A stretch of DNA of 64,000 nt. Origin: Oopsacas minuta. Its lineage: Eukaryota > Animalia > Porifera. Below the pieces are notes generated by a model. That model did no database searches and was not told where the DNA came from. It saw only the letters and a list, made by a program, of their open reading frames with translations. The stretch is taken from positions 620,001-684,000 of the forward strand of contig JAKMXF010000210.1 in the NCBI GenBank assembly GCA_024704765.1, written 5' to 3'. The translations under genes and the position numbers were made by a program. Below, piece after piece: positions 833 to 62,286 of the stretch (its first letter is position 1; each line of letters starts with the position of its first letter).

Positions 833-3800
833 CCCACAACACATGTATCCCCGCTTCTAGGAGACCACTCCAGACATCTAGCAGCAAAATTTCTCTTGTC
901 TATTTTCATCTGTAGAGCTCCATTCCACGTAGAATAAGTGCAAACTAGTCCCTCGTAATAACCGGCGAGTATAAACTGACCGCAAGGACTGAATTTAACC
1001 TTCATGGCGTATCCTGCTCCCGGGGAGGAGATTGAGAGGAGAGGTTTACCTATTAAACCAGACCAAACCTTAGCTTTGCAATCTTCACTTCCTGTAACCA
1101 GGAACTGTCCATTGGGCGTGTAACACAAGCTTGTCAGAGGTAGATTGTGTCCTATAATTGATCCCACTTGAGTCCCTGCCTTAGTTGACCATATCTTAAC
1201 CTCTCCGTTGAGTGACGCACTAGCTACATGTCTGCCTGAGGGGGCGTAGGCTACTGCTCTGACGGCTGAAGTATGCCCCTTCATGATCTTGAGTTTCCTC
1301 TGATTAAATGTATCCCACATTCTGACATTACAATCCCAGCCTCCGAATACAGCTAGCTGGTTATCAGGATGTAGTGCTACACAGTTAAGAGGTTTTACTG
1401 CTATTTTAAGTTGTGATACAAATGCACCTGTCTTTGAATTCCACACACATCCAGTACAATCCCAACTAGCTGATATTATTTGCTTGCCATTACTTCCTGC
1501 TACACATTGAGATATTTTCTTAGAATGCTTCTTCATAACTGATATTCTGTGTCCGTCTATCACATCCCAGAGACAGAGAGTCTTGTCTTCTGAAGCTGAA
1601 CACATCCTTGTATCACCTACAAACCAAATATTGCATAGATGCATATACATCATATAACAATGTGCCGTAATTACCTGAGAAACATAAACTGACGATAGGA
1701 CCAGCATGTCCTACAAATGTCTTGGCTTCTTCTCCTGTGTTTATGATGTATAGCTTGATTAGACAGTCATTTGTACCACAGGCTAAATGCCTACCATCCT
1801 ATTTGCAAATATGTTAATTAGTCATATACTATACTTTATGATATTTGATATATATTTACCTGTGAGACCGCGAGACACTTTGCGACATGTCCCTGTTGTC
1901 CAATTGTCATCTGATCTAACACCTCTCTGGAAGGCTTGTTCTCCCAGAAAGCTAACTGTCCTAAGGAGTCTCCCTTCCTTGAGGTCAATATCCGCTCTCC
2001 TGCGGTAGGAATACTGGAGAGAGGGGAATTGAGAGCCTGTTGTATCAACAGAGATGGAGTATGCCTTATGATGTGGAGGTTAGACGACACAAAGTTATGG
2101 AAATCTGTAACCTCAGGTGTACTCATGTGTTTAATATATTCTCGTGTCTGTATCTGAGGAAGATTTATAGGAGGAGAATAATCCTCTAGGAGAGAAAGGG
2201 CGTGTCCAGAATGACACTTGGCCTCTAGGAAAGTCAAGTCTGTGAGTAGAGCAAGGTTCTTCTTGAAAGCATAGCATTTGTTCAGATGGTAGTTGACATC
2301 TCTGTAAGCCCTGGGGTTACGTCCACTCCAACTCATGTTTCCGTCGGGATCTATCGTCTTCAAGAAGTAATTTGCAAGTGTTGTGTGACATTCCTTCTCT
2401 ACTTCTGCTCCCTTCATATATCTCAGTTTTACTGCTTTCCTAGCCTCTCCCTACAACATTAATAATCATATAATCAATACCACATACTAGATAGATAGGA
2501 TAAGATCCTTACATACCTGAAATAAACATATATAAGTGTTGTTAGATGAGCTAGATTCATTCTCTGTACTTTTAACAAAGTCATTCAACGCTCTTACAAG
2601 TCTCTGTAGATTAGCAGGAGCCATTTTAGGCTGAATCATTCCTAATAACTCTTCCTCGTTCAATCCATCTCTACTGCACACAATAAGACATAGAGCTTGT
2701 TTGGAAGTTTCCTTGGTGTGATCATCTTCCAGACGAGCTAGAATCTCTTGTAGAAGTAAGGGTAGTGTCTGGCTAATCCTCTTTATTCTATCAACTATCT
2801 TCTCGAATATTCCGAACACACGTAGCTCTTCACAAGCTAACTTTAAGAAGAGAGGATTATCAGACTCTTTCTTAGAGAGTAGTACTCTCATCTCTCCACT
2901 GAATGCTCCTTCATCTAACTTCTTATGATGTCTAGATAGGAGAGTATTAACTAGATTTTCTTTGTCAAACACATCTAGTCCTTTCAGACGGAACAAAGTA
3001 GGCTTGGTTAACCTCCTCCCTAATGATAATTCAATCTGAGTTCCTTCTACAGCACTGATAACAAACAAGATATTTGATGGTATAGGGTCAGGTAACCACT
3101 CGAGGGATTGAGCCATAAATGCGTGTTCTAACAGGTCCAATCCATCCAGGATAATCACTAGCGGTACTCCAGTTGTAAGGCTCTTTGAGACTTGTCTTAG
3201 GTGTTCTGGTAATCCTGCCACGAGGCTTTGGTAATCTTGCGGAATTTCACACTCAATGCTAGGAAACCTGCGATTAATTTCCGCGTAGAGTCTTATCAGT
3301 ATATTTACAACATTAGTGGATCCAGGAGCTGCTCCACAGATGTGCGATATTACATGTTTTATTCCTATCCAAGCGATCAGCTGTTGTGACAGCTGACACA
3401 TGACAGCTGACTTTCCAGAACCTGGTTTACCGTTGGCAAATATTACTCCACCTTGTATTCCATCTTGAGCTACTTTATTCATTAATTCCTTGAGCGCAGC
3501 TTTCCTACCAATGAATCCATCACTCAGATTTGCGATGAATTCCGTGTGTTCTTTGCTGATATCAACTAGCAAATACATTGTAAGTTAAATGCAATGGTAT
3601 ACATTAAGTTAATCATTTGTATTACCTTTCCTATCCGGATTTTCGTCTATTTCTGGGTATATATTTTGAATTGCATTCCAGAGATTGTTTAGAACTCTGT
3701 TACCGAACTCTGTCAGGCCGCCAGCTACTGGTACGCCCCCTACCACACCTCCCCAGGTAGCAGGATAGTTATCAAACACCTCAATACCTGATCCCCTGAC

Positions 3801-6800
3801 GCTATCTTTCAGGTCTCTTATCCGTTTAACTCTGTCCTGCTCTTTATCACTGTGATAGAAGTGAGATCTGTATTCAGGTAGTATCTACACATAATTATAG
3901 AAGTATAAAACATGATCATAATAGGTTATTACATACTTACGTCTTTGGATAGTTTAGAGTTATCTCTGAAATAAAAGAACGAAGTCTCTTGAGCTAGTTC
4001 AGGATTGTTTAGAGATGATATACAGAATTCTAGTTCTGTGATAGAAGTTTCGTTAAACCTCTTTTCATCTGATTGTATCCATGGAAACTCTGGATAACTC
4101 TTTAAATATTCGAATCCTGGTACCCATCCGTATCTCTCTCCCATCATTCCTATAAACAAGTCACATTTTTCTGCCTCAGCTAGACATAGACTGAGTGCTT
4201 GTTTGTTCTCAGATTGTTGTCTGGTTACACCCCATCTTAGGTCTACTTCATAAATTCGTACTTTTAGTTGTTCTGCTCTTGCTCTCAGCTCTGGAAATAC
4301 GAATCTAAAAGAGTATAGTTAATCAACCTTGTATATACGTATAGAGATTGAGCATGTGAACATGATAACCTTGTCAGTAGATCTCGCTCTCCGTGCATGT
4401 CTAAGAAAGTACTCGAAATAAATACTCTACAACTCCTCCAGTCACTAGTAGAGATGCCAGGGAGAGGAGCCATCTTCTTTAACCTCTGCTCTACGTTACT
4501 CTTATCCAATCTACTTACTGTCTTCTTACTATTTTCTTTCTCTTTAAGCTCGTACTTCAAGTCTATATTTTCAACATGTGTCAGCTGAGCACTATCTCCT
4601 CTCTGATTGATAAAGCTAAGAATCTGGTCACTATACCCTGACAAGTATATGTCATTCTCATGCTCTGGTGTCATACTCTCATCTAACCTAGCTCTGGGAG
4701 ATGACAGGTCTACTGAGACGAAGAGTAGGTTAGGATTAACAAACTCTCTGTACTTCCTGAGGAAAGATTTGAATTCTCTTCCAGAATTCTCCTCAGATTC
4801 ATAGTCTATAGTGTTAGATAGTACAATAAGATTGTCTATAGGGATCCTGTCCTTTAAATAGTTCTTGAGATAAGCTACAGGTAGTCCAGATGTGTTGCTG
4901 TCGAATGCTGAATTGTTTATCAGCTGCATTAGAGCAGATAGATTGTGTAGGATGGTACCTTCTTGTAAATTAAACTCTTGAAAGTCTGTAGTAAATCCTA
5001 TCAGCTTACAATCTTCACAAGAATACTTACACATTAAACCCAGCAGTAATCCAACCTACAAGTACACACATGAATACTATGTATACCAGCTCTATTTTGA
5101 GTAACTTACTTCCTTAACTGTCCTTGGGGTACCCATCCCTTTGAAAGCAGTGCACGGTACATCTAATGCTTTAGACACACAACATAATACAATAGTTACA
5201 CCAGGTATAGGCTGTATGTTGAATTTAGTAGCAATCTTAACTGCTGTGTCAAGAGCATCTCTCAATCGTTTAACAACATCTTTATCAACTCTGCTATATT
5301 TCTCTAGATCTTTGTTGTATTGTATATCTGCTTTGGCTATCTGTTTGGGGGTAGGTCCCCTCTGCATACGTCCTCCCCTTCCCCCTCTACCTCCTCTACC
5401 TCCCCTACCACCAGTACTCGGGAGATAGTCTTTGATTCTAATATCTCTAGCTGAGGCCACATTAGCTTCTAAACTCTCTTTCTTCTTCTCTACCTCTTCT
5501 AACGCCTAGTATAATTATAGATGATAAGTACTCAGCCCGTAATATAACTCCTCCTCTAGCAATAGGTTATATGTACCTGGTAAGCAGAGAAGAATCTGAA
5601 TGGGAATTGTCTACTATTAGTAACTGCATACTCATCAGTTAACTTCTTTATAACCCAGCTGAAGTACTTAGGCTGTACTCCAGCTAGTAATAGATTCCTC
5701 ATATTACGTAACATAGCCATGAATGGTAGCTTATTATGGTCAATAAGCTCCTCCCAAACTTTAGCCTTGTTCCCTCGTGTGGATATTTGAGTCTCCCAGG
5801 TTTCAGGGACAGGAAGTCTCATCCGTTTTCCAGCTTTATCCTCATCCCACATTCCAATGAGGCCTGCTCTACGGAACGCTTCTGGATCCTCTGGATACCT
5901 CTTTCCTATATAATCATAAAGTAAATGATATTATCTATGTATTAGCTAGTTGTAACGTTACCTAGTAGTGACATTACTGGTTCCACTGGCTTGCATATAT
6001 GTAGCTTTCTGATCAGCTGTTTGAGAGTGAATGACAGTTGCTGCATCTCATCTATTGTGACTGAGTAGTTCTCATCTAATTGTATCTTACCCCATTCTTC
6101 TTCTGAGTTCCATCCATCATCAGAACTACTATCACTATATGTTGTGGCATCATAGCTATCTAGCTCGTCATCACTTGACTCACTGCTAGAATCGAATAAG
6201 TTACCTAAGTTTTCTCTAAAGAATATTTGGTAAAATATGGGTTTAATAATAAGATGATCGTTGTGTGGTATAACTTACTTCGATCCTGGTGATACAGAGC
6301 GCTTCCTCTCTTTTTGTTCGGTGGGAAATCCCAGACGCTGAGGCTTACCAGCTTTCTTGTTTTCTCGCTTCTTCCTATTCTTTGCTTTATCTTTGTTATA
6401 CTTTGCCAGCTGATAGTTGTCAAAATCCTGAAACTTAGTCATCATAACCTTCCTTAGAGCTACAGGTAGGCTCTTGAACTTTATCCCTGAGTCACATAGT
6501 GTCTGATATAACTCTGCTACTTCTATCCAGTCAGAGGGGAGACGGATACAGGTAGTGTAATATCGCTTGAGATAAGGTCTACAGCTGTGGAGCATTGATG
6601 CGAATGCGAGTAGGAAATTAGAAGGGGTTCTGAGATTCAGTTCTTGTCTCGAATAGAGAACTGATTTCAAAACGAATTCTGGATCATAGAAAGCTACACG
6701 ACTAGCTATGTACATCAGAACCAATCGTCCATGGTTCTTGGGATCTTTGTAGTTAGGACCTCCAATTAGTGCTGCAGCCATTCCATGCAAGAGTTGTCTT

Positions 6801-7414
6801 TTTGCGTTAATGATATCATCAGAAGCTTTGTGTACTCCTCCTGTTAGTGACATTGATAGTTCTATTGTTGGATCTGGAAATCCAAGGATAGTCTCTTGCT
6901 CTATCTGCTCTTGAGCTAGAGTGTATAGGGGGAGATCCTCGGTAGCACAACCTAGGAAAGGGATGACCCCTCCATCCTCCTCTCCAACCAGTTTACGGGG
7001 GACACCAGGATCCTGTTTCTGTAAGGAGGTAGTGCGAAGTTTGGAGATGCTAGAAAACTCTGTGGGCTTATAAGAAGTAGTAGTTCGTGTTGATAAACTA
7101 GACAAGTTTTTGGAGGAGAGAGATCCGGTCAGAGAAGTAGAAGTAGAAGTAGAAGTAGAAGTACCCTTTGATAGAGAGCTGTATTTCCCTGCTGAGCTGC
7201 TGAGGAGAGATGGCCGGGCATGGGGCATGAGAGAAGAGCCGGATGCACGAGAAGGCCCTAAATCTGAGGACGTTCGTAGACTACTGGTTAGTTTGAGTGA
7301 GCTGTGTGTGTGTAGTGATGAAGTTCTGGAAGAGGTGAGAGAGGATTTTGATTCTAACTTCTTGGAAGTTAGAGACGAGGAACTGAGACTAGATTTTGTG
7401 TTGAAACTCGCCAT
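833..7414 (-). CDS. TEP1: Telomerase protein component 1 / vault-associated protein (TROVE, vWA, DUF4062, NACHT, WD40); multi-exon, 3' end continues leftward through an intron
   Basis: Exons include 7414-6279 (TROVE start, DPEFVLK...YSRQELNLR), ~5905-5577 (WEELIDHNKLPFMAMLRN), ~5510-5102, ~5070-4340 (FISSTFLDMHGERDLL), ~4300-3940 (DLRWGV, GERYGWVP), NACHT Walker A GKPGSGKS in 3578-2518, ~2450-1860, and WD40 exons ~1800-833. Introns are GT-AG. The last visible exon ends at a GTAAGT donor at 832. Inner boundaries are approximate. Confidence 0.9.
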
Positions 7415-7718: not shown

Positions 7719-10700
7719 ATGAAGTTAGTTATTTTGATAATTTTATGTCTCATTATTACCACCTCTTTATCAATTGAGATTACTCGTATTAACCCTCTCA
7801 GTGGACCCACTAGCGGTGGTACAGTAGTCTCCGTATGGGGGACTGGCTTCATTGGAGGTGCAGGAGGAGCTGTTTGTTACTGGCAAGGTGAGGGTGGGAA
7901 CTTTGGAGCAAGCAGTGACATTACTGCAAATATCAATGACTCTTACTTAGAATGTACACTCCCGAGTCTTGAGACGATTGATAGCTTCCAGAGAATATCT
8001 GTTGGAAAAGATTATGTGGAAATAGACTTCTATATTTCTCACAATCAGACTCTGTCTGCCAATAGTTTTAGCTTTATTTTTTTCAATCTGTCTAGACTCT
8101 ACGTCACAAACTTATCCCCTCAAGAAGGGCTGTACACACAATCACAAGATGTTACTTTCTCAGTTCACAATCTCTACTACACTGATGAGCTAGTCTGTAT
8201 CTTGTTACAAGGTATCTATCCAATTACTGGTGTTACTCTTGGGTCTATTGATGTAGTGACGTGTCAGATTCCATCAGTTTCTTATTCTAGAAGAGAACAG
8301 GTGTTCTTGAGTCTGAATGGAGATGTGTTTGGTATAATACCACCTGCTGTAGATAATAGTCTATACTTTATATTCTATAACGATGCTCCTGAGGTTGTAG
8401 TTAGCTACTCAACTTCTCTGACTCTTCTCTTTCTCAATTTCGACAGAGAGGTGGAGACAGGAGGACGGGACCAGGTTAACTCTAATCTCCCTCCAGACTG
8501 TGCTCTCTTATTCACAGAACTCTCATTAAATCAGCTGGGGAGTGATGCTGTATGTAATTGGGACAACTATCATCAGAGGAGATTAGTTATAGAGCTTACA
8601 CATCTTACTTCTCTGAGAGGTGTTTCTAGAATATTCTATACTTCTACTCAATCAATACGTACTCGCTATGCAGCATACTCCTATATTTTAGAAGACAGTT
8701 CTCCTATACTACAGGACAATACCTTACCCATTCCTGCTCTACACACTTACTCTCATATCCCTACTTGTGGTAGTATGGAATTTAATGCTATTTCCTCTCA
8801 GCTGGGAGGATCACAAGATCTAGTAGCTAGCTGGAGTGTGTCAGCGGATGATCAAGTTGCTGAGCAACTGATATCTGAATTCACTTCTCAATCTGGTTTA
8901 CAATGGTCTCTCCCGGTCTCTTTATTTGAATCAGCTGTTACTTATACTGTAAATCTATCCTTGAATAACTTTATAGATAATAGTATAGTCTATTCTATCT
9001 TTCTGACCGAATCACCAGCTGATCTGCCCTCTGTTATAATACACTCTCATATCCCTGGTACGCTGTATACACACAGAGATACTCTGATACTAGTTACTGT
9101 GGATATTCCTGTTTGTCTGTCTATCACTCACTCTCCTCTCTCATTCTCTTGGACTCTCTCTAACCCGGTCACTTCTCCTCTTACTTCTAGCCTACCTGTA
9201 CTGTTTATTCCTGCTAATATGCTCAATATGTCTAATCAAATAACTTATACATTATCTGATGGTAACAAGTCTCTTACTTCTCTATTCTCTATCGATTTAA
9301 CACTGGGTGATCCTGTAGCACTAATCTTAGGGGGAGATATACGGACACACTATCTCGAAGAGGATCTTATCATTGATGGGTCTGGTTCTTTCGACCCCTC
9401 CCAACACTCTCTAACCTACAGCTGGACTTGTGTGGATACTGAAGGCCTAACACCCTGTGAAGATAACAATAATAACCTCTTGATAACACAAGATTCTAAC
9501 AAGCAATATATGTTTGAACAAGTTAAGTTAAGAGAATCAGTCATACAATTCTCTCTGGTAGTAGTAACTAGTGACTCCCGTATATCAGCTACTAGTTATC
9601 TCACAGTGCACATCAGTTCTTCTACTCCTGACCTGATTTACTTCAATCCGATATCATACCTCCGTGTCCCTGTTAATCAGCTGACACTGGTAACAGGCTG
9701 GGTGAGGTCCTCCTCTCCTCTAAATACTTTATTAATATCTACAGAGAAGGATGTAGTAGATGATCAGTACTATTATGATTACTCTCCTGATTTGGAGGTA
9801 GAATATATTTCATTTATATCACTCCCTTCTCTTTACCAGCTCCCCTATGACTCTATCTATCTACCAACCATGAGATTAACTCAATTCTCATTTCTTATAC
9901 CTCTTATATACTTAGCAACAAGACAGAAGTTCAGACTGATGGCTAGTTTAAGTTGTGATAGTATTTCTACTGCTATAGCTAAGATGGATATTCTGATTGA
10001 CTCAGCTCCTCACTTAGGGGGAATAACACACTCTAGCTATATGAATAATGGAGTTGAGGTGTATTCTATGATAGCTAGCGGGTGGATAGATACTCCAAGT
10101 GCTCTCCCTCTCAAATACAGATATGGTATCAGACAGGAGAGTGAGGTGCACTGGTTAACTCCCTCTACCACTCTCTCACAACTAGACACCCCTCTATTGT
10201 GTAGCATAAGTGGAGAACTACCATTGATATTAGAGGTAGAGAATAGTATTGGGAGTGTAGTGCTTTATCCCTACGAGATATTCATATCAACACATGATGA
10301 CGTAATAGGTGCCCTAGATAAGGTCAAACAGAAGTTGGTATATGGTTATAACGTTATGAGTGGATTGAGTATAGTAAGCAGTATTATATACTTCTATAAG
10401 ATAGAGGAACAGCTGATTCCTACAGATATAGCTGATACCCTCTGGGTGTATATAATGTCTGCTTACTGGTCTATTCTCCCTCAGGAGAGATCATTCACCA
10501 GACATGTAATATTCCTAATAACTGAGTTTATATTACAAGTTAATATACCATCAGCTACACAGACTGAAGAGATATTTGATGTTCTAGAACATTCTTTAAC
10601 TTCTGTTATCAGCTGTTCTGTTGATATCTCTGATAGAGGTATTACTACTCAGTTGTTCAACAACACATTTGCTGCAATAGCGAAACTTGACACTCCTGAT

Positions 10701-13076
10701 TCCCCTGTATGGCACAGATTACCACACCTCCTCTCAGTGTTAGCTGCTTCAACTCGTAACAAAAATTCTGATATCTTGACCCTATCTACTGGACTCATGT
10801 CTATAAAAGTATCACATACCTATCCGCTAGCTAGTTACTATGCAGTATGTAATGCTAGAGAGCAGGACTGTACAGGATCACTACCTCTAATACAGTTCTC
10901 TCAAGCTCTGTTTGATTCTTATAACAGCTGGGGTTGTTATGATCCAGATTGTATCATAGAATCTAATAGATTTGAATCTGTAGAATGCTCTGGTGTAGTC
11001 ATAACTACTTCTCAACTGGATAAACAATCCTACCTCCTACCTAATGAATATTCTACTCAGGTTCTGTCTAATATCCTGTCAGTTAGTCTATTACATCCTG
11101 CTACTTACCAACAGCTAGATGTGACAAATGTCAGTATAACCCTTCAGATTGGTATAGTCCCTTCTACCTACTTGTGTGCATTATGGAGTAGTTCTACTCT
11201 TGAGTGGGATACTAGCATGTGTGATACCTTCCCTATAGATAACTCAACTGTCAGTTGTCAATGTAAGACCTCTGGTACTGTAGCAGTAGTTACTACCTGT
11301 CCTGCAGGAAGCTATGGTTCCTTATGTTTTGACATTTGTCCACATGGTTTATGGGGAGACAAATGCACAGAGACTTGTGTTTGCTCTGAGAACTCTAATT
11401 GTCTTCCAATAGACGGATTCTGTGACTGCTTTCCTGGCTACATTGACTCAGGATGTTATACACAGTGCAATGAGTGGATGTATGGAAAATATTGTACAGA
11501 GACTTGTGATTGCTACGGAGTTAATAGCATCAGTTGTAATCACATTAGTGGAGAGTGTGATTGTAAAATAGGGTTCAGAGGTGACGATTGTGCCACTACT
11601 TGTTACCCTGGTACATGGGGGTACATGTGTGCCGAGGAGTGTACCTGTCAAAGCACTGGAGGATGTGATTTTATAGATGGTACATGTATTTGTGAAGCAG
11701 GCTACACTGGAATAGATTGTGGTACTCCTTGCTCTTTATGGAAGTTTGGTTATGACTGTGCTTATAACTGTACTTGTGATATAGATCATACCACCATATG
11801 TAGGTCTACGGATGGGGTGTGTATCTGTAACTCCTCGTATATAGGAGCTAATTGTGGTACATTACTTGTAGTTACAGAGGATCCTATTGATCCTATGATT
11901 ATTATCGTGGGTATTGTCATTATAGTGGTTGTGGTTATAATTGTTGTTATTATCCTTATCTGTGTGGTAGTCTTGATTGTGATCTGTTGCAAGAAGAGGA
12001 ATAGAAGAGTGGTAGCTATTTCTCCTGATAAAGTTCCTTTATACTACTACAAACCTGATTGGAGTAGACATTCACAAGAGAGACTTAGTCCTATCTCCAA
12101 TAAACAGGTTGATTATCAAGAATTCGTGTCTACTAAGGTGGAGAGTGAGGTGCTAGTTTCCGGTGGGAGGAAGGATAGTGATTCAATGTTAGAAGAGGAG
12201 GATTACTGGTATTTTATAGAGGTTGTAATTGTAGATGACAGAGATTGCTGGAGACCTAACTCACAGAAGGGTACCTCACAAGCCTCTGAGACACCCTTCC
12301 AAGTACCTGAGAGACCTGAGATCGGTATGCTGTCTCTATCAGGACGGTACTCAAATGAAGGGAAATATGACAATATGTTTGATAAGTTTCCAGAGCCTGT
12401 CTTGCTACCGAGAGAAGGCAATACCCTAACAGATTTAAGAGAAGCATTCGTGGATTCTGGATTGTGGTTAGGCGGACCTTTTCAGTTCTTGAAAAAGAAC
12501 ATAGCTTACATGTTTATATCGTTAGCTAACGAGGATGACTGCGAATTGTCTGCTCTGGAAGATAACAAAATATACATACAACGAGTCAAAGATGAGGATG
12601 CAGTTATGATGGAGCTTTGTGTGTGTGGGAGAGTATCGCAGTTTGACTGTCAGTGCGGGATAAGAGGTTACTGTGGAGAAGACTGTCAGACAAAAGACTG
12701 GGATGAACATCTTCCTCTGTGCTTAAAAGCGCAGAATGTTGAGGATGATGCTAACATGTCGCTTAATGTGACAATGGCTAATAGCTTGGATAACTATCTT
12801 ATAGAAGAGTCATCGCAACCAGCTGATATAAAATTAGCTCAAAGCTCTCATTTAGAGCAGATAGGAGAGAGTGATCAAGAAGGAGAGGCTATTCCTCTAC
12901 CCCCTTCTCCTATTCATGTCCTCCCTAAGGTACATGAGAAACCATCTTTCCCAGATATGGAGGAGGTACCTGTAACTAAATCTGAAGTTGATCTGCTTGA
13001 TACTAATCCTAAGACAGATGAGGTTGTGGTTATTGATGTACATGAAGACAAGAGACGACGCTTTGTTACTGACTAG
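7719..13076 (+). CDS. Single-pass receptor, 1785 aa: signal peptide, IPT/TIG, REJ/PKD-like region, GPS-like motif, laminin-type EGF repeats (MEGF10/11-like), TM, cytoplasmic MYND-like zinc finger
   Basis: Single-exon ORF. IPT: ITRINPLSGPTSGGTVVSVWGTGF. REJ-like: LIIDGSGSFDP...LTYSWTC. GPS-like: CALW...W...C...SCQC (~11170-11290). Repeats CxxGxWGxxCxxxCxC (~11295-11870). Hydrophobic TM ~11895-11990. YCGEDCQTKDWDEHLPLC at 12618-12722. Confidence 0.75.
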   Translation: MKLVILIILCLIITTSLSIEITRINPLSGPTSGGTVVSVWGTGFIGGAGGAVCYWQGEGGNFGASSDITANINDSYLECTLPSLETIDSFQRISVGKDYVEIDFYISHNQTLSANSFSFIFFNLSRLYVTNLSPQEGLYTQSQDVTFSVHNLYYTDELVCILLQGIYPITGVTLGSIDVVTCQIPSVSYSRREQVFLSLNGDVFGIIPPAVDNSLYFIFYNDAPEVVVSYSTSLTLLFLNFDREVETGGRDQVNSNLPPDCALLFTELSLNQLGSDAVCNWDNYHQRRLVIELTHLTSLRGVSRIFYTSTQSIRTRYAAYSYILEDSSPILQDNTLPIPALHTYSHIPTCGSMEFNAISSQLGGSQDLVASWSVSADDQVAEQLISEFTSQSGLQWSLPVSLFESAVTYTVNLSLNNFIDNSIVYSIFLTESPADLPSVIIHSHIPGTLYTHRDTLILVTVDIPVCLSITHSPLSFSWTLSNPVTSPLTSSLPVLFIPANMLNMSNQITYTLSDGNKSLTSLFSIDLTLGDPVALILGGDIRTHYLEEDLIIDGSGSFDPSQHSLTYSWTCVDTEGLTPCEDNNNNLLITQDSNKQYMFEQVKLRESVIQFSLVVVTSDSRISATSYLTVHISSSTPDLIYFNPISYLRVPVNQLTLVTGWVRSSSPLNTLLISTEKDVVDDQYYYDYSPDLEVEYISFISLPSLYQLPYDSIYLPTMRLTQFSFLIPLIYLATRQKFRLMASLSCDSISTAIAKMDILIDSAPHLGGITHSSYMNNGVEVYSMIASGWIDTPSALPLKYRYGIRQESEVHWLTPSTTLSQLDTPLLCSISGELPLILEVENSIGSVVLYPYEIFISTHDDVIGALDKVKQKLVYGYNVMSGLSIVSSIIYFYKIEEQLIPTDIADTLWVYIMSAYWSILPQERSFTRHVIFLITEFILQVNIPSATQTEEIFDVLEHSLTSVISCSVDISDRGITTQLFNNTFAAIAKLDTPDSPVWHRLPHLLSVLAASTRNKNSDILTLSTGLMSIKVSHTYPLASYYAVCNAREQDCTGSLPLIQFSQALFDSYNSWGCYDPDCIIESNRFESVECSGVVITTSQLDKQSYLLPNEYSTQVLSNILSVSLLHPATYQQLDVTNVSITLQIGIVPSTYLCALWSSSTLEWDTSMCDTFPIDNSTVSCQCKTSGTVAVVTTCPAGSYGSLCFDICPHGLWGDKCTETCVCSENSNCLPIDGFCDCFPGYIDSGCYTQCNEWMYGKYCTETCDCYGVNSISCNHISGECDCKIGFRGDDCATTCYPGTWGYMCAEECTCQSTGGCDFIDGTCICEAGYTGIDCGTPCSLWKFGYDCAYNCTCDIDHTTICRSTDGVCICNSSYIGANCGTLLVVTEDPIDPMIIIVGIVIIVVVVIIVVIILICVVVLIVICCKKRNRRVVAISPDKVPLYYYKPDWSRHSQERLSPISNKQVDYQEFVSTKVESEVLVSGGRKDSDSMLEEEDYWYFIEVVIVDDRDCWRPNSQKGTSQASETPFQVPERPEIGMLSLSGRYSNEGKYDNMFDKFPEPVLLPREGNTLTDLREAFVDSGLWLGGPFQFLKKNIAYMFISLANEDDCELSALEDNKIYIQRVKDEDAVMMELCVCGRVSQFDCQCGIRGYCGEDCQTKDWDEHLPLCLKAQNVEDDANMSLNVTMANSLDNYLIEESSQPADIKLAQSSHLEQIGESDQEGEAIPLPPSPIHVLPKVHEKPSFPDMEEVPVTKSEVDLLDTNPKTDEVVVIDVHEDKRRRFVTD

Positions 13077-31159: not shown

Positions 31160-31517
31160 AATAACTAGAATATTATTGTGTTGTATCAGTCATAATATTA
31201 CACTGTAGGATGTTAGTGAGTTAATTAATATTCAACTATAAAGATTCTATATTTGGCTCGTCCGTTTTCATAAAGGGTGTCTTCTTACACATCAAGTATA
31301 TTATGGAATACATAGATATTCCTTCAAAATATTATCAACAATTTGCAATATTCCGCTATGATTACTTTTGTTTACTAAAATAGAAGTATATTACATCATA
31401 CATATTTAATTGTTTGTTCGTGAGAACATGTTTACGCCTATTATTTTATTTTCTGTTACTATAATATAATTCATGTTTCCCTTTGTAGTGCTCTGTTCCC
31501 TCCGTTTTTCAGGTCTA

Positions 31518-34500
31518 ATGGCAAACCAGATTGAGTTAGATTCAATTGAGAGTAATTATATCGCTTTACCACATAATAATGTGAGTAAGCCACCTGATGC
31601 TTTATACATTGTACCATCACAGACTCAAATCGACGATATCGTGCTCAAGAAGGACGATCTGTTGATTGCAGGCTCCTCTTACAATGATAATAAATTTGTG
31701 ACTTGTTCCGCTATCTTCTCAGAAGAGACTACGTACGGTACCTTTCAGGTCCCTACGGATACCATTACCCTCCTCAAACCATTATCTCATCATTCAGTAG
31801 TAATGCGAGAACATATCCTAAAGTTCTTACTCCAGACTAACAGTACTCTTGCAGTAAGTATTGCTTACAAAACAGACCTCCTAGAGGGATGCGGAGAATT
31901 GTCACGAGGGGACACACTCAGTCACTTCATCGCACGTCACGCTAGCGATATGGTATTCTCTCATATATTCAACAAACTGCATGAGAGTTTCCCATTCGAC
32001 TTGAGAAACGGAGAGAACGCTACCATCCTACAGGTTGCAGTGCAGGATAAGAACAAGGCTACTTTTGATGGGATACTAAATCTACTGAAGTGTGAGACAG
32101 GAGACGTAAGGAAATCTGATTTTATCAATAACAGACTTGATAATACAGATACAGTACTACATATCCTAGCTTGTACTTACTCACCTGAATTTAGGATTGA
32201 TCTAACAGGACTGATGCTAGCAGGAGCTGAGTTAGAGATAGAGAGTACATTGAAGAGGACTTGCTTCCATGTAGCAGCTGAGTTCAATAATTCTGGTTTT
32301 GCTAATGCAATTTCTGAGGCTCTAACAGAAGCTCAAGGATCTGATCAAGCTAGACGTATACTACAGAAAGCTCTTGAGAAGAAGGATACTAATGATAAGG
32401 TAGCAGCATTACTAGCTGAAGAAGAAGAGACTCTTAAAGCTATTCTGAAGCTGTGTAATCTGGAGAAACCAGTCTTTGAAGACGGTCGTCTCATACACTA
32501 CGCAGCTTTCACTAATAACGTAATGTTATGTGACTGTCTGGTAGAGCTAGGGGCTGTAATAGATAGCTTTAATAACAAGAGTTTCACAGCTCTTAAGATA
32601 TCCTCTAAGAAAGGACATCTTGACGTCACGCGATCCTTGCTTAGAGCAGGAGCTAATCCTAATCTTGTCTCCAAGAACCCTGGATTTACTGCTCTTAATA
32701 ACGCAGCTCAATTCGGTCATGTAGAGTGTGTAAGAGTCCTGATAGAGCATGGTGCTAATTTAAAGAGTGACGATATGGCTACTACTCCTATTCATTCTGC
32801 TGCTTATGGAGGTCATGTTAGAGTACTGGATTATTTCCTGAAGGAGTGTAATACTGATGTTAACTTGCTTAATACTAATGGTAAAGTACCGCTATATCAA
32901 GCTACTATACAAGGACATACCTCTTGTGTACAGTTGTTGCTAAGACACGGTGCCGATGTCAACCATACTCTGAGTGATCAAGGAGAGACCTTGGTACATA
33001 TTGCAGTGAAAGAGAACAGAAGGCAGATATTGAGAGCTCTCTTAGAACATAAGGCTAAACCTGATGAAGCAATGAAGAATGGTAAGACTCCTCTGATGCT
33101 AGCTGTGGAGCAAGATAATGTAGAGTTTATTCCTCTGATTATGTCTTATGGTATTACGCTGATTAAGAAGGATACTAATGGTAATACAGTATTCCATTTG
33201 CTGGCTAAACACGGATCTATAAAGAGTAGTAAATACTTGTTACGTCGTGTATCCCTTATATCCGGTGTAACACAAGAGTATCAGCTGTATAAGAATAAGA
33301 ACAGTAATAATAAATCTCCATTTGACATAGCTCTAGAGAACAGACAAGATAAAGTTTTGGAGCAGTTTATTAGGTATATGCCTGAGCAGAAGAAGAAAAA
33401 AGATCACAAAATGTTCCATCAACTCTATGACAAAGGGCTCTACCATATAATTAAGCTGATTATACGGGAGCTACCTAGTCAAAAGAGTGGACAATACCAT
33501 AAGGTTAATAGCAGATTTGTAGATTCTAATAGTGATGGCCATATCCCTGAGGACGCTAACTTCTCTCCCTCTAAATCATCCTTCCTACACAAACTAGCTA
33601 GCTGTCCTGATTTCTCTTTGATTCTACATCCTCTCATTGATAGTATTATTAATGCTAAGTACCAGATTTATCGATGGTGGTTTGTGGTTTCCTTTTTGTT
33701 CCACTTTTTCATATTCTTACCGATATTATTTTTTGCCCTCATTCAGGGTTCCTATCTCTGTGACGATGAGGTATCAAGTTATACAACACCAGAAGATTAC
33801 GTAAGACTTGTTTGTGAGGGTTTTGTTATTCTGTATGCCTTTTTCACTGTACTGATGAACTTAGTTAATTTTGTTAGTTTCTGGCACTCACTATATCAAG
33901 ACAGTAAACAGAATCTTTGTCCAGACAACTTAATGGATGTGGAGTTTCTAAATCCTAAAACTAATATTGAAAAGTTTCCTCTCAGAGCTCCACGAGTTAT
34001 TCAGGTTGGAATTCTAAAATTTAAAGATTTGCTGTATAAACTGGATTCAAAACTTCATTTGATATTCAGTGCAGCTATGAGATACTTTTTCAGAACCAAT
34101 ACTCTATTAGGGATTATCGGTTTCTGCTCTCTGCTAATTCTAATTTCACTTAGAATCCTTAACTCCCGTTATCAATGGTTAATGGCTGCTTTCGTATTTA
34201 TGTCTTATTCACTGAGTCTATTCCGCTACGCTAAAATTAACCCTACACTAGGACTGTATATGTCTGTACTACTACGTTTGTTATACACTGAGGTTCCGAA
34301 GTTTATTTGTGCATTTATTTTGCTGTCACTTACCTGCTCAGGAGCTCTACACTTAATCGTACGATTTGAGATATCTCCTATACCCAGCAGTTCTAGTTGT
34401 AACCAGACATTAAACTTCTCTTGGTTCGGTGAGTATTATCATCCTGTCTACTCTCTGCTGGCTCCTATTTTCTTCCTCGTTAATCCTGGTATCGGAGAGG

Positions 34501-35036
34501 GAGTATTCTCACTATACCAAGCACAATCTATCACATTTGTATTGTTTTATTTGATATTCACATTTATTATTTCTATCTTCATGATAAGTCTATTTATTGC
34601 TCAGATCACAAAATCTTACAGAACTATTGGAAATTTTGAAATCTTACAATTCAAATTGGATACAATAATAGAGATAGAAAGAAACTCTATTGTATCGTTA
34701 GTATTCGGTAAATGGCTTAGGAAGAGTTCCTCAGTCATGAAGGTTTTGATACCAAAGCAGAAATGGGAAGAAGAGGTGTTGAAAGATGAGAATAACATAC
34801 CTTTATATAATTCTAATGTCGTTACGCAGGAAACGAATCGACAAGTACTGTCCAGTAAAGAACTGGTAGAAAAGAAGATGGAAGAGTTGAATAGGACAAC
34901 TGACGGGTTGTCAAATAATATTGAGTCCATGCAAGATACGCTTACTCATGTAGAACAGTTTCAAACAGACATACAGGTACAATTAGACTCAATTCGTGTA
35001 GCTCTACAGCATCTACAACAATGTTTGGTAAAGTAA
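31518..35036 (+). CDS. Ankyrin-repeat TRP-like (TRPA/TRPV-type) channel
   Basis: More than 10 ankyrin repeats, pre-S1 LHPLIDSIINAKY, about six hydrophobic segments, S6-like FLIFTFIISIFMISLFIAQITKSY, C-terminal coiled coil. The ATG at 31518 follows TTTTTCAG and is preferred over 31473. Confidence 0.75.
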   Translation: MANQIELDSIESNYIALPHNNVSKPPDALYIVPSQTQIDDIVLKKDDLLIAGSSYNDNKFVTCSAIFSEETTYGTFQVPTDTITLLKPLSHHSVVMREHILKFLLQTNSTLAVSIAYKTDLLEGCGELSRGDTLSHFIARHASDMVFSHIFNKLHESFPFDLRNGENATILQVAVQDKNKATFDGILNLLKCETGDVRKSDFINNRLDNTDTVLHILACTYSPEFRIDLTGLMLAGAELEIESTLKRTCFHVAAEFNNSGFANAISEALTEAQGSDQARRILQKALEKKDTNDKVAALLAEEEETLKAILKLCNLEKPVFEDGRLIHYAAFTNNVMLCDCLVELGAVIDSFNNKSFTALKISSKKGHLDVTRSLLRAGANPNLVSKNPGFTALNNAAQFGHVECVRVLIEHGANLKSDDMATTPIHSAAYGGHVRVLDYFLKECNTDVNLLNTNGKVPLYQATIQGHTSCVQLLLRHGADVNHTLSDQGETLVHIAVKENRRQILRALLEHKAKPDEAMKNGKTPLMLAVEQDNVEFIPLIMSYGITLIKKDTNGNTVFHLLAKHGSIKSSKYLLRRVSLISGVTQEYQLYKNKNSNNKSPFDIALENRQDKVLEQFIRYMPEQKKKKDHKMFHQLYDKGLYHIIKLIIRELPSQKSGQYHKVNSRFVDSNSDGHIPEDANFSPSKSSFLHKLASCPDFSLILHPLIDSIINAKYQIYRWWFVVSFLFHFFIFLPILFFALIQGSYLCDDEVSSYTTPEDYVRLVCEGFVILYAFFTVLMNLVNFVSFWHSLYQDSKQNLCPDNLMDVEFLNPKTNIEKFPLRAPRVIQVGILKFKDLLYKLDSKLHLIFSAAMRYFFRTNTLLGIIGFCSLLILISLRILNSRYQWLMAAFVFMSYSLSLFRYAKINPTLGLYMSVLLRLLYTEVPKFICAFILLSLTCSGALHLIVRFEISPIPSSSSCNQTLNFSWFGEYYHPVYSLLAPIFFLVNPGIGEGVFSLYQAQSITFVLFYLIFTFIISIFMISLFIAQITKSYRTIGNFEILQFKLDTIIEIERNSIVSLVFGKWLRKSSSVMKVLIPKQKWEEEVLKDENNIPLYNSNVVTQETNRQVLSSKELVEKKMEELNRTTDGLSNNIESMQDTLTHVEQFQTDIQVQLDSIRVALQHLQQCLVK

Positions 35037-58518: not shown

Positions 58519-61500
58519 ATGACTGACGTAATATTCCAAGAAATGCAAGCAACATTCATTAAAATACCGCTAACAGCTAGACCACCAACCAGAAAGAAGT
58601 TTATTAGATGTAGTAAGGATACGCTGGAGATTTTAGTCAAGCCTTCTAAAGGTGGTAAAGCTGAAGACATAATAGATATAAGAACTATTCATGAGGTGAG
58701 GAAGGGGAATGATATTCTGAGAGAAGAGAGGATTGTGGATGCCAGTGTTACTGATGCTAAAATGTGTTTTACGATTGTATATGGTTCAGAGTTTAGATTG
58801 AAATTTGGAGTCTTTATTTGCTCTAATTGGAACATTCGTGAGTTCTGGTCCGAGGGACTTTTGACTCACATGCAAACAATCGCGAAACTTGATACAAATA
58901 GTCATACTAGGATTTGGCTTATGAAGGAATTCAATGAACTGGATAGGAACCAGACCAGCACTATTGGGACTAATGATTTAAAGAAGACCTTTTTCAATAG
59001 AATTCAGCTCAAAATTCCTCGCGAAAAACAACACAAATTGATTGCAGACCTTGACACTAAGAATGTTGGTTATGTTTACTTTCCACAGTTCAGACAATTC
59101 TACCACAAAAAACTAGTATTCAACGAAGATATGATGAAGCTACTTAGTCATTGCATGTCTTTCCAGCTCAAGAATTCTTGGTATATTAGCTCTCAAGAGC
59201 TCTGTGCCTTTCTACAATCAGAACAATTCGTTCATCACATTCCTATAACCACCTTACTGGCCGAGAAAATGATCCGGCCTTATCTGCTCTCTGAGAAGCC
59301 TCTCTCCACTCCCAACTTCCCGATAGATGAATTCTTCGACTACCTCTTCTCTCGTGGGAATAGTTTATTCGATGATGAATACACCTCTAGACTCTTGGCT
59401 GCTGATCCTAACTATATGGACTACAGTATGTCTGAGTATTGGATCAATTCCTCTCATAACACCTATCTAACTGGTAACCAGTATGCATCAGAGAGTACTG
59501 TAGAGGCTTATATACGAGTAATGAGGAGCGGGTGTCGATGTATAGAGCTGGATCTCTGGGACGGAGGTCCTGATGACTTACCTTGGATCACTCATGGTCA
59601 CACCAGATGTACAAAGATAAAGTTCCGTGACATAGTAATTGCTATTCGTGAGCATGCCTTCGCTACCTCAGACTACCCCATGATATTATCACTAGAAGAG
59701 CACTGCTCTATTCCAATACAGAAGAATACTGCTTATGAGTTTAAGAAGATTTTAGGAGATCTGTTGCTTACAGAACCAGTAAAGGGCGCTACCTGCCTTC
59801 CTTCTCCCAATCAGCTGAAACGTAAAGTTATCCTAAAACACAAGAAACTCCCCGAGGGATCAGATGAGACCGTGGTCTTGACAGATACGGGAGAGGCTCA
59901 GGTCACTAAACAGCAGGACATATCCAACTCCCAGAAGAACGGATTCTTGTATCTGAAAGATCCAGGAGCTAATGTATGGACTCGTCGCTACTTTGTACTG
60001 ACAGACAAAATCCTTTCCTATTGTATAGAAGAAGATGACCAGGAACAAGACACAGAGAATGTACGGGACCACATTTATATGGAAACAGTACCTTCCCACT
60101 TAAAACATATAAATCATGTATGGTATCATGTAGTTGATAGAGATGGAGCAGTGGACAAACTGAAAGAATTTGAAGGTGGTAATGGTTCCTTCTTGGTACG
60201 TCCTAATGATAAGTATGAAGGTTATGTGTCTATATCATTTAAACATGAAAGAGAGGTTTATCACAGTCTTGTAAAACGTATACCAAGTCCTGACGGTCTG
60301 TACAACTATCAGCTGGTACATCCTATGACATTTGATGATATACCTAGTCTCGTGGATTACTACAAGTGTCACCCTTTACGAGCTTCTACCTTTGAACAAA
60401 TCTTGACTACTCCCTGTCCCTGTCCTAGCCTCAGTAACACTAACCACGAGGCTCAGCCGTGGTTCCATGCGGGTATGAAACGCTGGGAAGCTGAGAAGAT
60501 GCTGACATCTGTCCGACTAGAAGGAGCCTTTCTAGTCCGTCCCTCTGGTGAGCAGAGCACCTACACGATAACATTCAGGACTGAGAATGAGATTAAGCAT
60601 TGTAGAGTTGAGTTCAATAAAGACAGTGGTCTATACACGATAGGAACTGCTCAGTTCGAGTCTCTGAGTGAATTAGTGGTTTATTACAAGTCTCATCCTC
60701 TCTATCGTAAGATGAAACTTAAACACGCTATCAATGAGAGTATGCTCAAGAACATCGGAGTAGATGCAGAAGCCTCAGCAGAAGCTGAGTACATATCTGT
60801 TAATCCTGTGACATACAGATCTATACACGCATTCACTGCTCAGAACAAAGATGAATTGAGCTTCCCAGCTGGAGTAGAGATAACTAATGTGATAGAGCAC
60901 CAGCACACGAAGGGGTGGTTTCAGGGAGACTTTGGTGGAAAGGTTAATCTATGGTTTCCTGAAAACCACGTTAAGAGGTTCGATGCTACCACTCCTCTGA
61001 CTCCAATGGACCCACCGAAGCCTGAGCTGGATAATCAAGAGGAAACCATAAGGATCGAGAATTTGGAAGTGACTCGGGTTAGCCCACATTTAGCAGGTCG
61101 TGAGTGGGTGCTGAGACTGGTTCAAGACGTTCCAGTCGAGTACAAAACGCTAAAACCTGAATCTAGCAATGCTCTATTTGTGGGTTGTGAAAACGAAGAA
61201 GACTTCAAATCTTGGGAGTCTAAGCTTAATGAAGTGAAGAAGGAACTGACCAGAAGTCAGAGCTTGGATGCTCGTCTCCAGAAGCGGACTAGCATTGCAA
61301 GAGAGATGTCTGACTTGATCATTTACTGTAGATCTGTTCCATTCCGTGTGGAATCTATAGGGAATGGAAAGTTTAGCGAAATGTCTTCATTCCCAGAAAC
61401 CAAAGCATTTCATCACGCCCTCAATCGCGAGACAGCTCCCAAACTTGTGATTTATAACCAGCAGCAATTCAGTAGAGTATACCCCAAGGGCAGTCGTATA

Positions 61501-62286
61501 GATTCTTCCAACTACTTGCCTATTCCTCTATGGAATATGGGGTGTCAGATGGTAGCACTCAATTTTCAGACACCAGATAAAGCTATGCAAGTTAACGATG
61601 CTCGTTTTTTGGTTAACAACAAACTGGGATTCGTGTTGAAGCCTGCCTTTATGCGAATGAAAGATACCAAGTACAATCCACTAGATCCCAAGACTGTACC
61701 CACTCCCCCCACACGTATAACCATCCGTGTATTGGGTGGGAGACATCTGTTCCGAATAGGCAGAGGGTTCCCTTCCTGTCGTGTTACTGTTGAAATTGTA
61801 GGAGCAGACTATGACAATCAGTATTATATGACATCTAATATATCTGATAACTGTCTGAACCCTGTCTGGGAGTACAAGAGCTTTGAGTTCTCTGTAAAGA
61901 ACCCTGAGTGTGCTTTCCTAAGATTCGTAGTACATGATATAGACATGTTCGGAGATCCTAACCAGATAGGTCAAGCTACCTATCCATTGACTGCTATACG
62001 TCCCGGGTTTCGATCGGTACAGTTAAAAACCCCATTCTCTGAAGAGTTAGAACTCTCTTCTCTTCTTGTATATGTCATCTTAGAGAACGGCGAGAAGTCG
62101 CAGAGTGACAGTACGGAAATCAAGTCCCGCATCGACAAGCTCAAGGACGAGTTACGAGGTCTCTACTCGTCGGGAGACCTGCGCTCTGATCTAATTGAGT
62201 CCAAGAGACGGGAGCTACAGGCTGCTCAGAACCAGATGGACCGAGTCAGTCAGGAAATGAATAGAATAAATACTTTACGCAAGTAG
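58519..62286 (+). CDS. PLCG1: Phospholipase C gamma, single exon
   Basis: PH, EF, X box (YWINSSHNTYLTGNQ, GCRCIELDLWDG), split PH, two SH2, SH3, Y box (FSRVYPKGSRIDSSNY), C2. Confidence 0.95.
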   Translation: MTDVIFQEMQATFIKIPLTARPPTRKKFIRCSKDTLEILVKPSKGGKAEDIIDIRTIHEVRKGNDILREERIVDASVTDAKMCFTIVYGSEFRLKFGVFICSNWNIREFWSEGLLTHMQTIAKLDTNSHTRIWLMKEFNELDRNQTSTIGTNDLKKTFFNRIQLKIPREKQHKLIADLDTKNVGYVYFPQFRQFYHKKLVFNEDMMKLLSHCMSFQLKNSWYISSQELCAFLQSEQFVHHIPITTLLAEKMIRPYLLSEKPLSTPNFPIDEFFDYLFSRGNSLFDDEYTSRLLAADPNYMDYSMSEYWINSSHNTYLTGNQYASESTVEAYIRVMRSGCRCIELDLWDGGPDDLPWITHGHTRCTKIKFRDIVIAIREHAFATSDYPMILSLEEHCSIPIQKNTAYEFKKILGDLLLTEPVKGATCLPSPNQLKRKVILKHKKLPEGSDETVVLTDTGEAQVTKQQDISNSQKNGFLYLKDPGANVWTRRYFVLTDKILSYCIEEDDQEQDTENVRDHIYMETVPSHLKHINHVWYHVVDRDGAVDKLKEFEGGNGSFLVRPNDKYEGYVSISFKHEREVYHSLVKRIPSPDGLYNYQLVHPMTFDDIPSLVDYYKCHPLRASTFEQILTTPCPCPSLSNTNHEAQPWFHAGMKRWEAEKMLTSVRLEGAFLVRPSGEQSTYTITFRTENEIKHCRVEFNKDSGLYTIGTAQFESLSELVVYYKSHPLYRKMKLKHAINESMLKNIGVDAEASAEAEYISVNPVTYRSIHAFTAQNKDELSFPAGVEITNVIEHQHTKGWFQGDFGGKVNLWFPENHVKRFDATTPLTPMDPPKPELDNQEETIRIENLEVTRVSPHLAGREWVLRLVQDVPVEYKTLKPESSNALFVGCENEEDFKSWESKLNEVKKELTRSQSLDARLQKRTSIAREMSDLIIYCRSVPFRVESIGNGKFSEMSSFPETKAFHHALNRETAPKLVIYNQQQFSRVYPKGSRIDSSNYLPIPLWNMGCQMVALNFQTPDKAMQVNDARFLVNNKLGFVLKPAFMRMKDTKYNPLDPKTVPTPPTRITIRVLGGRHLFRIGRGFPSCRVTVEIVGADYDNQYYMTSNISDNCLNPVWEYKSFEFSVKNPECAFLRFVVHDIDMFGDPNQIGQATYPLTAIRPGFRSVQLKTPFSEELELSSLLVYVILENGEKSQSDSTEIKSRIDKLKDELRGLYSSGDLRSDLIESKRRELQAAQNQMDRVSQEMNRINTLRK

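Follow-up and report, generated by a model that had tools for sequence, protein, structure and literature searches.

A single gene of the glass sponge Oopsacas minuta is described here. It lies at positions 7719-13076 of the plus strand of a 64,000-nucleotide stretch of genomic DNA (contig JAKMXF010000210.1 of assembly GCA_024704765.1, G000:C210:620001-684000; the whole stretch is called the window below, and positions refer to it unless stated otherwise), where one uninterrupted open reading frame (ORF) of 5.4 kb encodes 1785 amino acids (aa). This is an intact, conserved glass-sponge gene for a single-pass type-I surface receptor, with its parts in the order signal peptide, IPT/TIG domain, REJ domain, GAIN domain, four MEGF-type EGF repeats, one transmembrane (TM) helix and a 361-aa cytoplasmic tail that carries a MYND finger. 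The explanation that we find best, and regard as fairly probable, is a sponge-family type-I receptor of the form TIG, REJ, GAIN, one TM, conserved segment and MYND, in which the GPS would be dead to cleavage and the read-out would pass through the MYND finger. Several of these domains had been read from the letters in a preliminary description of the locus; of them, IPT, REJ, GPS, the EGF repeats and the single TM are borne out by Pfam, structural modeling and hydropathy, and the MYND finger by sequence only.

Seven orthologs recovered from ENA assemblies (P0002-P0008, 1782-1807 aa) are collinear with the Oopsacas protein over their full length at 49-65% identity, and the EGF, GPS and MYND cysteines are all invariant across them. 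As every one of the seven begins at the same signal peptide, the long ORF is supported over the public gene model. The latter, KAI6655233.1 (NCBI, 1370 aa, "MEGF10 isoform X4"), corresponds to aa 420-1785 preceded by 4 unrelated residues; it lacks aa 1-419 (window 7719-8975) and therefore the signal peptide, the TIG domain or domains and the start of the REJ region. The mismatch between this model and the ORF is the one point in favor of an annotation or assembly artefact, be it a fusion of two genes or a decaying pseudogene. Such an artefact is extremely improbable and was rejected, given that 1785 codons are open, that the same end-to-end order recurs in the seven orthologs and in the more distant homolog P0186, and that the structural cysteines are all invariant. 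The gene consists of a single exon, and a six-frame search of the 61-Mb Oopsacas assembly revealed no second copy of it. Identity among orthologs is highest in the cytoplasmic part, with 65-73% in aa 1491-1670 (the MYND finger and the segment preceding it) versus 54-63% in the ectodomain, a distribution that fits the idea of the tail being the signaling end.

The GAIN domain (aa 862-1192; 10302..11294, plus strand like all other features of the gene) was delimited with the AlphaFold model mf99f56ce88ea, Foldseek and VIA-align, and comprises a helical subdomain A (aa 862-1010) and a beta subdomain B (aa 1027-1192). Modeling of aa 831-1286 gave a beta sandwich preceded by seven helices; the mean predicted local distance difference test score (pLDDT) was 66, with values of 80-90 across the GPS. 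The best 8 Foldseek matches were all GAIN domains of adhesion G-protein-coupled receptors (GPCRs), with E values from 1.3e-9 to 1.4e-6, and in VIA-align the model was superposed on the BAI3 GAIN domain (4dlo_A) with a Z score of 17.6 (258 residues aligned, 4.6 Å). Seven GAIN structures were matched at Z 13.6-17.6 with both subdomains covered; among the adhesion GPCRs BAI3 (4dlo), BAI2 (8oek), latrophilin (4dlq), GPR110 (8hc0) and CELSR1 (8vy2), this likeness extends over 240-264 residues at 10-14% identity. A GAIN fold around 11170-11290 (GPS at aa 1151-1191), expected in the preliminary description, is thus borne out by the AlphaFold model, by Foldseek (E 1e-9) and by the Z score of 17.6. In sequence comparisons, Pfam gave no GPS match to the receptor protein, and phmmer against the PDB retrieved the BAI2 GAIN domain alone, at E 0.7.

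A canonical GPS is cleaved at HL|T/S and is located near the first TM (PMC9672506). In the receptor, translation and alignment with the Acytostelium protein P0090 define a GPS motif (aa 1153-1192; 11175..11294) in which T-S-G takes the place of H-L-T and where the model has a pLDDT of about 90. Its frame, C1153, W1156, W1163, C1168 and C1180-x-C1182, aligns with the canonical GPS and is unchanged in 8 orthologs (here and below, counts over eight orthologs refer to the Oopsacas protein together with P0002-P0008). The canonical motif of P0090 reads C-x-C-N-H-L-T-x-F-A-L-L versus C-Q-C-K-T-S-G-T-V-A-V-V in the receptor, placing Gly1186 at the position of the nucleophile. This glycine is invariant in the eight glass-sponge orthologs, and Gly is likewise found in the distant homologs P0186 and P0117. 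As H, L and the nucleophile (Thr, Ser or Cys) are all replaced and the Gly is invariant, the absence of cleavage at this GPS is a sound inference, so that both the replaced HL-T site (CQCKTSGT) and the probable lack of cleavage noted in the preliminary description hold.

Following the GAIN domain, a leading two-cysteine half-loop and four eight-cysteine EGF repeats of the MEGF/laminin type occupy aa 1194-1379 (11298..11855). They were recognized by cysteine spacing and by Pfam, which reported EGF_PEAR1L, EGF_laminin and EGF_Teneurin in the orthologs and PEAR1-like EGF (PF23301) on the receptor protein itself; in the alignment with P0186 they match the repeats of that homolog one for one. A single TM helix (aa 1393-1424; 11895..11990) followed by a KKRNRR stop-transfer sequence is the sole internal hydrophobic window (Kyte-Doolittle maximum of 4.2), and a TM is found at the same site in all orthologs. 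The signal peptide and this TM are the only two hydrophobic segments of the protein, so hydropathy agrees with a single-pass topology without a channel or 7TM region. Combined with the cysteine spacing, it also confirms that EGF repeats separate the GPS from the membrane: the last strand of the GAIN domain ends at aa 1192 and the TM begins at aa 1393, with approximately 200 residues of EGF repeats in between, and the GPS is not membrane-adjacent. In contrast to adhesion GPCRs, the receptor lacks both the 7TM bundle and a HormR domain, and the tethered-agonist logic of those receptors is impossible here, since the last GAIN strand leads to four EGF repeats and a lone TM.

The outer part of the ectodomain, made of Ig-like and REJ beta-sandwich domains, begins with the start codon and signal peptide (aa 1-18; 7719..7772), seen as an N-terminal hydrophobic segment. 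IPT/TIG domain 1 (aa 21-96; 7779..8006) was matched by Pfam PF01833 with 25.1 bits (cut-off 20.9) and was detected in 8/8 orthologs, with a best E value of 8.2e-8. A second TIG-like domain probably occupies aa 127-222 (8097..8384), as judged from the collinear homologs P0033, P0186 and P0040, which have two TIG stretches each; Pfam on the receptor protein gave no match for it. Between this domain and the Pfam REJ domain lies a family-specific, beta-rich region (aa 223-532; 8385..9314) that is collinear with an exon of an Oopsacas paralog on contig C66 of our assembly numbering (see below) and with about 20 first-exon fragments detected by HMMER. The REJ domain itself (aa 533-810; 9315..10148) matched PF02010 with an E value of 9e-15 and 54.6 bits (cut-off 25), and was found in 7/8 orthologs (best E value of 1.6e-25). 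Pfam searches of the receptor protein gave no cadherin, PLAT, PKD_channel, 7tm_2 or EMI match, and searches with sub-regions (the segment before the MYND finger, the GAIN domain and aa 126-334) gave no match.

The receptor shares with polycystin-1, PKD1-like proteins and sea-urchin REJ proteins a REJ domain placed ahead of a GAIN domain that has the GPS Trp and disulfide Cys; this pairing is the hallmark of PKD1-like and sea-urchin REJ proteins (PMC9672506). The pairing would be expected of a true polycystin-1-family protein, cleaved at its GPS and partnered with a polycystin-2-type channel. Membership in that family was nevertheless rejected, and we consider it highly improbable: the receptor has one TM and no PLAT domain, 11-TM or channel-like region, its cleavage triad is missing, with T-S-G replacing HL|T/S, and its GPS stands about 200 residues off the membrane. 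The tails differ as well, being a coiled coil or G-protein-binding region in polycystin-1 and a MYND finger in the receptor.

The EGF repeats point in another direction, since MEGF10, Draper, PEAR1 and SCARF1 also have eight-cysteine repeats of this type immediately outside a single TM. A sponge ortholog of the MEGF10/Draper/PEAR1 engulfment receptor would account for the membrane-side repeats of the MEGF/PEAR1/SCARF type (PF23301; Foldseek match to SCARF1, 8hna), for the single-pass topology and for the name given by NCBI. That name, however, rests on the 5'-truncated model, which is without the first 419 residues. The receptor has four repeats instead of about 15-17, no EMI domain and an unrelated remaining ectodomain: signal peptide, TIG, REJ and GAIN account for approximately 1190 of its approximately 1390 extracellular residues, and its nearest relatives in HMMER are REJ proteins. 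Moreover, neither NPxY nor a YxxL pair resembling an immunoreceptor tyrosine-based activation motif (ITAM) was detected by regular expression in the tails of five sequences scanned, including the Oopsacas protein. For the lack of EMI, the lack of NPxY/ITAM in the five tails scanned and the presence of only four EGF repeats, MEGF10 orthology was rejected as very unlikely.

Within the cytoplasmic tail, a conserved segment N-terminal of the MYND finger (pre-MYND segment, aa 1495-1632; 12201..12614) shows 65-69% identity over the orthologs and is partly kept in P0186, in the Aplysina metagenome contig discussed below (L008) and in the C66 paralog. No match to it was found in Pfam, the PDB or the ESM Atlas; from the last of these, the tail retrieved nothing usable and the whole protein one weak REJ cluster with a score of 0.77. 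The MYND zinc finger with an atypical CxC first knuckle (aa 1634-1668; 12618..12722) follows. Pfam PF01753 was found in 8/8 orthologs (best E value of 5.6e-6), and the MYND domains of ETO/CBFA2T1 (E 9e-4) and DEAF1 were matched among PDB sequences, with E values from 9e-4 to 7e-3. The ligands C1634, C1636, C1644, C1646, C1652, C1656, H1664 and C1668 follow the C4-C2HC order and are invariant in the 8 orthologs; their spacing deviates from the canonical one only at the CxC knuckles, the C-x3-C ... H-x3-C half being exact. Q1657, D1660 and W1661 are also invariant in the 8 orthologs. Of these, Q1657 and W1661 have the same offsets from the sixth ligand as Gln529 and Trp533 of DEAF1, which contact co-repressor peptides (PMC3555993). 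The receptor finger is like those of ETO/CBFA2T1, DEAF1 and ZMYND8/11 in its C4-C2HC order, in the Gln after the sixth ligand and in the Trp four residues on. It departs from these fingers, which have a CxxC first knuckle and belong to nuclear proteins, in that the receptor family has CxC and that a membrane receptor bears the finger on its cytoplasmic side.

The CxC spacing had been attributed to both pairs of the finger in the preliminary description. This is correct family-wide for the first knuckle, which is CxC in every family member examined, and in the alignment it applies to Oopsacas only for the second (window 12648-12656, aa 1644-1646), where C-Q-C results from a one-residue deletion relative to the CxxC of the seven orthologs. 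The protein ends in an acidic C-terminal tail with a basic cluster at its end and the stop codon (aa 1669-1785; 12723..13076), with a mean identity of 48%.

The identity of the MYND finger at 12618-12722 is supported by its sequence signature, namely the Pfam matches in 8/8 orthologs and the PDB sequence matches. Several points nonetheless weigh against a receptor that is not cleaved and signals through this finger. The zf-MYND match in the Oopsacas protein (aa 1635-1668) scored 19.8 bits, slightly under the gathering cut-off of 22.7. Structure prediction did not reproduce the finger: an AlphaFold model of tail aa 1425-1785, computed with 8 sequences, had a pLDDT of 32 and contained no folded finger, and the pre-MYND segment remained under 35. 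With a CxC first knuckle, and in Oopsacas a CxC second one, binding of zinc and peptide is not guaranteed. Finally, other proteases, e.g. sheddases, may still cut the receptor.

Two further observations concern this part of the tail. A sequence P-V-L-L-P (window 12396-12410, aa 1560-1564), about 70 residues N-terminal of the MYND finger, matches the PxLxP pattern of MYND ligands; P1560, L1563 and P1564 do not vary among the 8 orthologs, but P0186 lacks the motif. The sequence might be a ligand of a MYND finger, intramolecularly or in trans, or merely a strand of a pre-MYND domain. For the pre-MYND segment as a whole, the alternating hydrophobic pattern in four lineages led us to guess at a ubiquitin-like beta-grasp, for which the tools gave no support. 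Separately, a 219-aa soluble ORF at positions 245-904 of Ga0138324_10127726 (L009) has a coiled-coil-like start, a pre-MYND-like segment and a degenerate CTCG-type finger without some of the ligands, from which the unit of pre-MYND segment and CxC finger may also occur outside membrane receptors.

Taking these features together, we propose that the receptor is a non-cleaving adhesion or ligand receptor that would recruit partners through its MYND finger. Its GAIN domain would be a permanently closed structural module, with no autoproteolysis and no exposed tethered agonist, and the receptor has neither a 7TM nor an 11TM bundle on which an agonist of this kind could act. The EGF stalk of four repeats holds this module off the membrane. 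The outer domains, like REJ, TIG and EGF ectodomains elsewhere, would bind a ligand, be it matrix, glycan or cell-surface. Ligand occupancy or clustering could then be read inside the cell via the MYND finger. Since this finger retains both residues, Gln and Trp, with which ETO and DEAF1 contact PxLxP-type peptides, it should recruit a partner with a proline motif. The "adhesion or mechanosensory" role and the signaling through MYND put forward in the preliminary description remain putative.

The MYND finger could also serve a different route, in which the receptor is a membrane-tethered nuclear adaptor: ligand or force would lead to shedding and intramembrane cleavage, and the tail would pass to the nucleus and recruit co-repressors in a Notch-like manner. 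The partners of the MYND domains characterized so far (ETO, DEAF1, BS69/ZMYND11 and ZMYND8) are chromatin factors or co-repressors of the nucleus (PMC3555993; PDB matches), in line with such a destination. The tail is the most conserved region of the protein and has, in 8/8 aligned orthologs, a basic cluster of three or four residues near its C-terminus. Release of the C-terminal tail has been reported for polycystin-1 and fibrocystin. The cluster is short, however, with a run of at least four Lys/Arg in just 3/5 sequences scanned, and nothing in the sequence requires proteolysis, so we think the nuclear route unlikely. Extended to the whole family, it would make the sponge TIG-REJ-GAIN-TM-MYND proteins membrane-tethered transcriptional adaptors. 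Their MYND-bearing tails, freed by an adhesion or force signal outside the cell, would bring a co-repressor-binding module to the nucleus, in a Notch-like route from the surface that is made up of polycystin-type parts, and the GAIN domain of the EGF-bearing subfamily would have turned from a cleavage switch into a fixed module. This we regard as unlikely, and the non-cleaving receptor with a MYND read-out remains the reading that we prefer.

A second REJ-GAIN-TM-MYND region is present in Oopsacas on contig C66, at approximately 954.5-959.8 kb, with exons at 2081-3916, 4669-6420, 6407-6817 and 7069-7251 of the interval L007 (G000:C66:952500-962499). The order in this paralog is a Cys-rich VSP-like stretch, the region collinear with the receptor, a weak REJ match, the GPS, a Pro/Thr stalk, the TM, the pre-MYND segment and the MYND finger. 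Its exon aa 179-605 is collinear with receptor aa 180-603 (E 3e-11), from the second TIG into the REJ domain, and its MYND finger has a CWCG knuckle (E 5.6e-9). The GPS reads C-V-Y-T-H-F-T-Q-Y-T-V-A, so that H-x-T is kept and the second disulfide is gone, both partner cysteines being replaced. Cadherin repeats are found on the same strand upstream of the REJ-MYND region, at 938.5-947.2 kb; the C66 exons were compared singly with the receptor, and the cadherin and REJ-MYND parts are linked by their position and strand on the contig. An intact tyrosine-kinase ORF of 779 aa (PK_Tyr_Ser-Thr, E 6e-78; L006 5236-7575, minus strand, equivalent to G000:C66:951235-953574) sits on the opposite strand between the two parts, either nested in an intron or separating two genes. 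Other MYND-bearing candidates of Oopsacas were rejected as members of the family: that on contig C297 is a PHD-bromo-MYND gene of the ZMYND8/11 type, and the MYND ORFs of C299 and C133 have the ordinary CxxC spacing.

A cadherin with such an end has been drawn before. In the legend to Fig. 3 of Zhu et al. 2013 (PMC3620549), the dachsous of Amphimedon appears with VSP, IPT, REJ and MYND domains. As far as that legend allows the comparison, the sponge cadherins with an IPT-REJ-MYND end (Amphimedon dachsous and the Oopsacas C66 region, ~938-960 kb) are like the receptor in TIG, REJ, GAIN/GPS, one TM, pre-MYND segment and CxC MYND. The cadherin-linked form of C66 differs in having many cadherin repeats upstream and a Cys-rich VSP-like stretch, whereas the receptor has no cadherin repeats and a signal peptide of its own. 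It differs also in its Pro/Thr stalk, H-F-T, loss of one GPS disulfide and introns, as opposed to the four EGF repeats, dead GPS and single exon of the receptor. In the searchable literature, no other paper joining "REJ domain" with "sponge" was found, and the Oopsacas genome paper makes no mention of MYND, MEGF or polycystin. The claim that the receptor is undescribed can consequently be kept in part. The core of the sponge TIG-REJ-GAIN-TM-MYND family has been known since 2013, from the drawing of Amphimedon dachsous, and recurs in the C66 paralog; the cadherin-free, EGF-bearing, cleavage-dead form is new, insofar as no description of it was found.

To follow the spread of the family, aa 225-1195 were used as a HMMER query against 1.84 billion representatives, which yielded 222 matches at E <= 1e-3, with scores from 931 bits (P0008) to 135 bits. 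The named matches were generic REJ proteins of Acytostelium, Diadema, Anneissia and Percolomonas. Among the unnamed ones, P0046/P0186 (1794 aa) aligns collinearly over query aa 18-1379 at 24% identity (E 2e-82). It has TIG and REJ, a Gly-type GPS, EGF repeats like those of the query and one TM, and its two MYND fingers, arranged in tandem, each have a CVCG knuckle. In P0117, a Gly-type GPS leads directly to an EGF repeat. About 20 fragments of approximately 700 aa start at a signal peptide and TIG and are closer to the query and P0186 than to the C66 paralog, and seven further exon fragments cover REJ-GAIN. Six fragments of approximately 550 aa end within the GPS, as expected of exons cut by introns. 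In word-index protein searches, neither the whole protein nor the REJ-GAIN region nor P0186 as query brought up more than the ortholog set and one cluster.

Scanning metagenomes with P0186 at first gave nothing that was confirmed. Scanning their contigs by pattern led to MKWU01033039.1 (L008), where a pre-MYND exon 51% identical to P0186 is followed by two MYND exons. The accession corresponds to an Illumina assembly of the metagenome of the demosponge Aplysina aerophoba (PMC5649159), and the introns and homology suggest that the contig is sponge-host DNA. As this tail is of the P0186 type, the EGF-bearing subfamily probably spans glass sponges and demosponges; it was found in no named non-sponge organism. 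The homolog search has returned the seven collinear orthologs, P0186, the Aplysina metagenome tail and the Oopsacas C66 paralog, and the module of TIG, REJ, GAIN, single TM, pre-MYND segment and CxC MYND is common to P0186, the C66 paralog and, for the tail only, the Aplysina contig.

GAIN domains are discussed almost exclusively as autoproteolytic tethered-agonist switches mounted directly on a membrane bundle (7TM in adhesion GPCRs, 11TM in polycystin-1). In the receptor, selection keeps an evident GAIN fold though it is cleavage-dead, stands approximately 200 residues off the membrane and belongs to a single-pass protein. Together with the C66 paralog, which keeps H-x-T and has no EGF spacer, it makes a natural pair for asking about the role of a GAIN domain that does not act as a switch. 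The pair, H-F-T without EGF spacer versus T-S-G with it, fits an association of membrane proximity with cleavage competence, an observation on two genes only. The MYND finger, familiar elsewhere as a part of co-repressor adaptors in the nucleus, is here placed on a receptor tail, suggesting a short route from the surface to a partner in sponges, animals without several canonical metazoan signaling genes (PMC10280926). As a practical matter, the public gene model is 5'-truncated and misnamed MEGF10.

The receptor gene is flanked by a TROVE-domain gene (minus strand) on one side and a RING-IQ gene on the other. The TROVE-domain ORF (Ro60/TEP1-like) occupies window 6275-7414 (-), upstream of the receptor gene, and an ORF for a NACHT/NPHP3-like NTPase is found farther upstream at 2487-3578 (-). 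Other long intronless ORFs are present in the window, e.g. that of a 1187-aa ankyrin-repeat protein at 31473-35036. A PLC-gamma of 1255 aa is encoded by a single exon at 58519-62286 (+), with PI-PLC X and Y, two SH2 domains, SH3, a split PH domain and C2.

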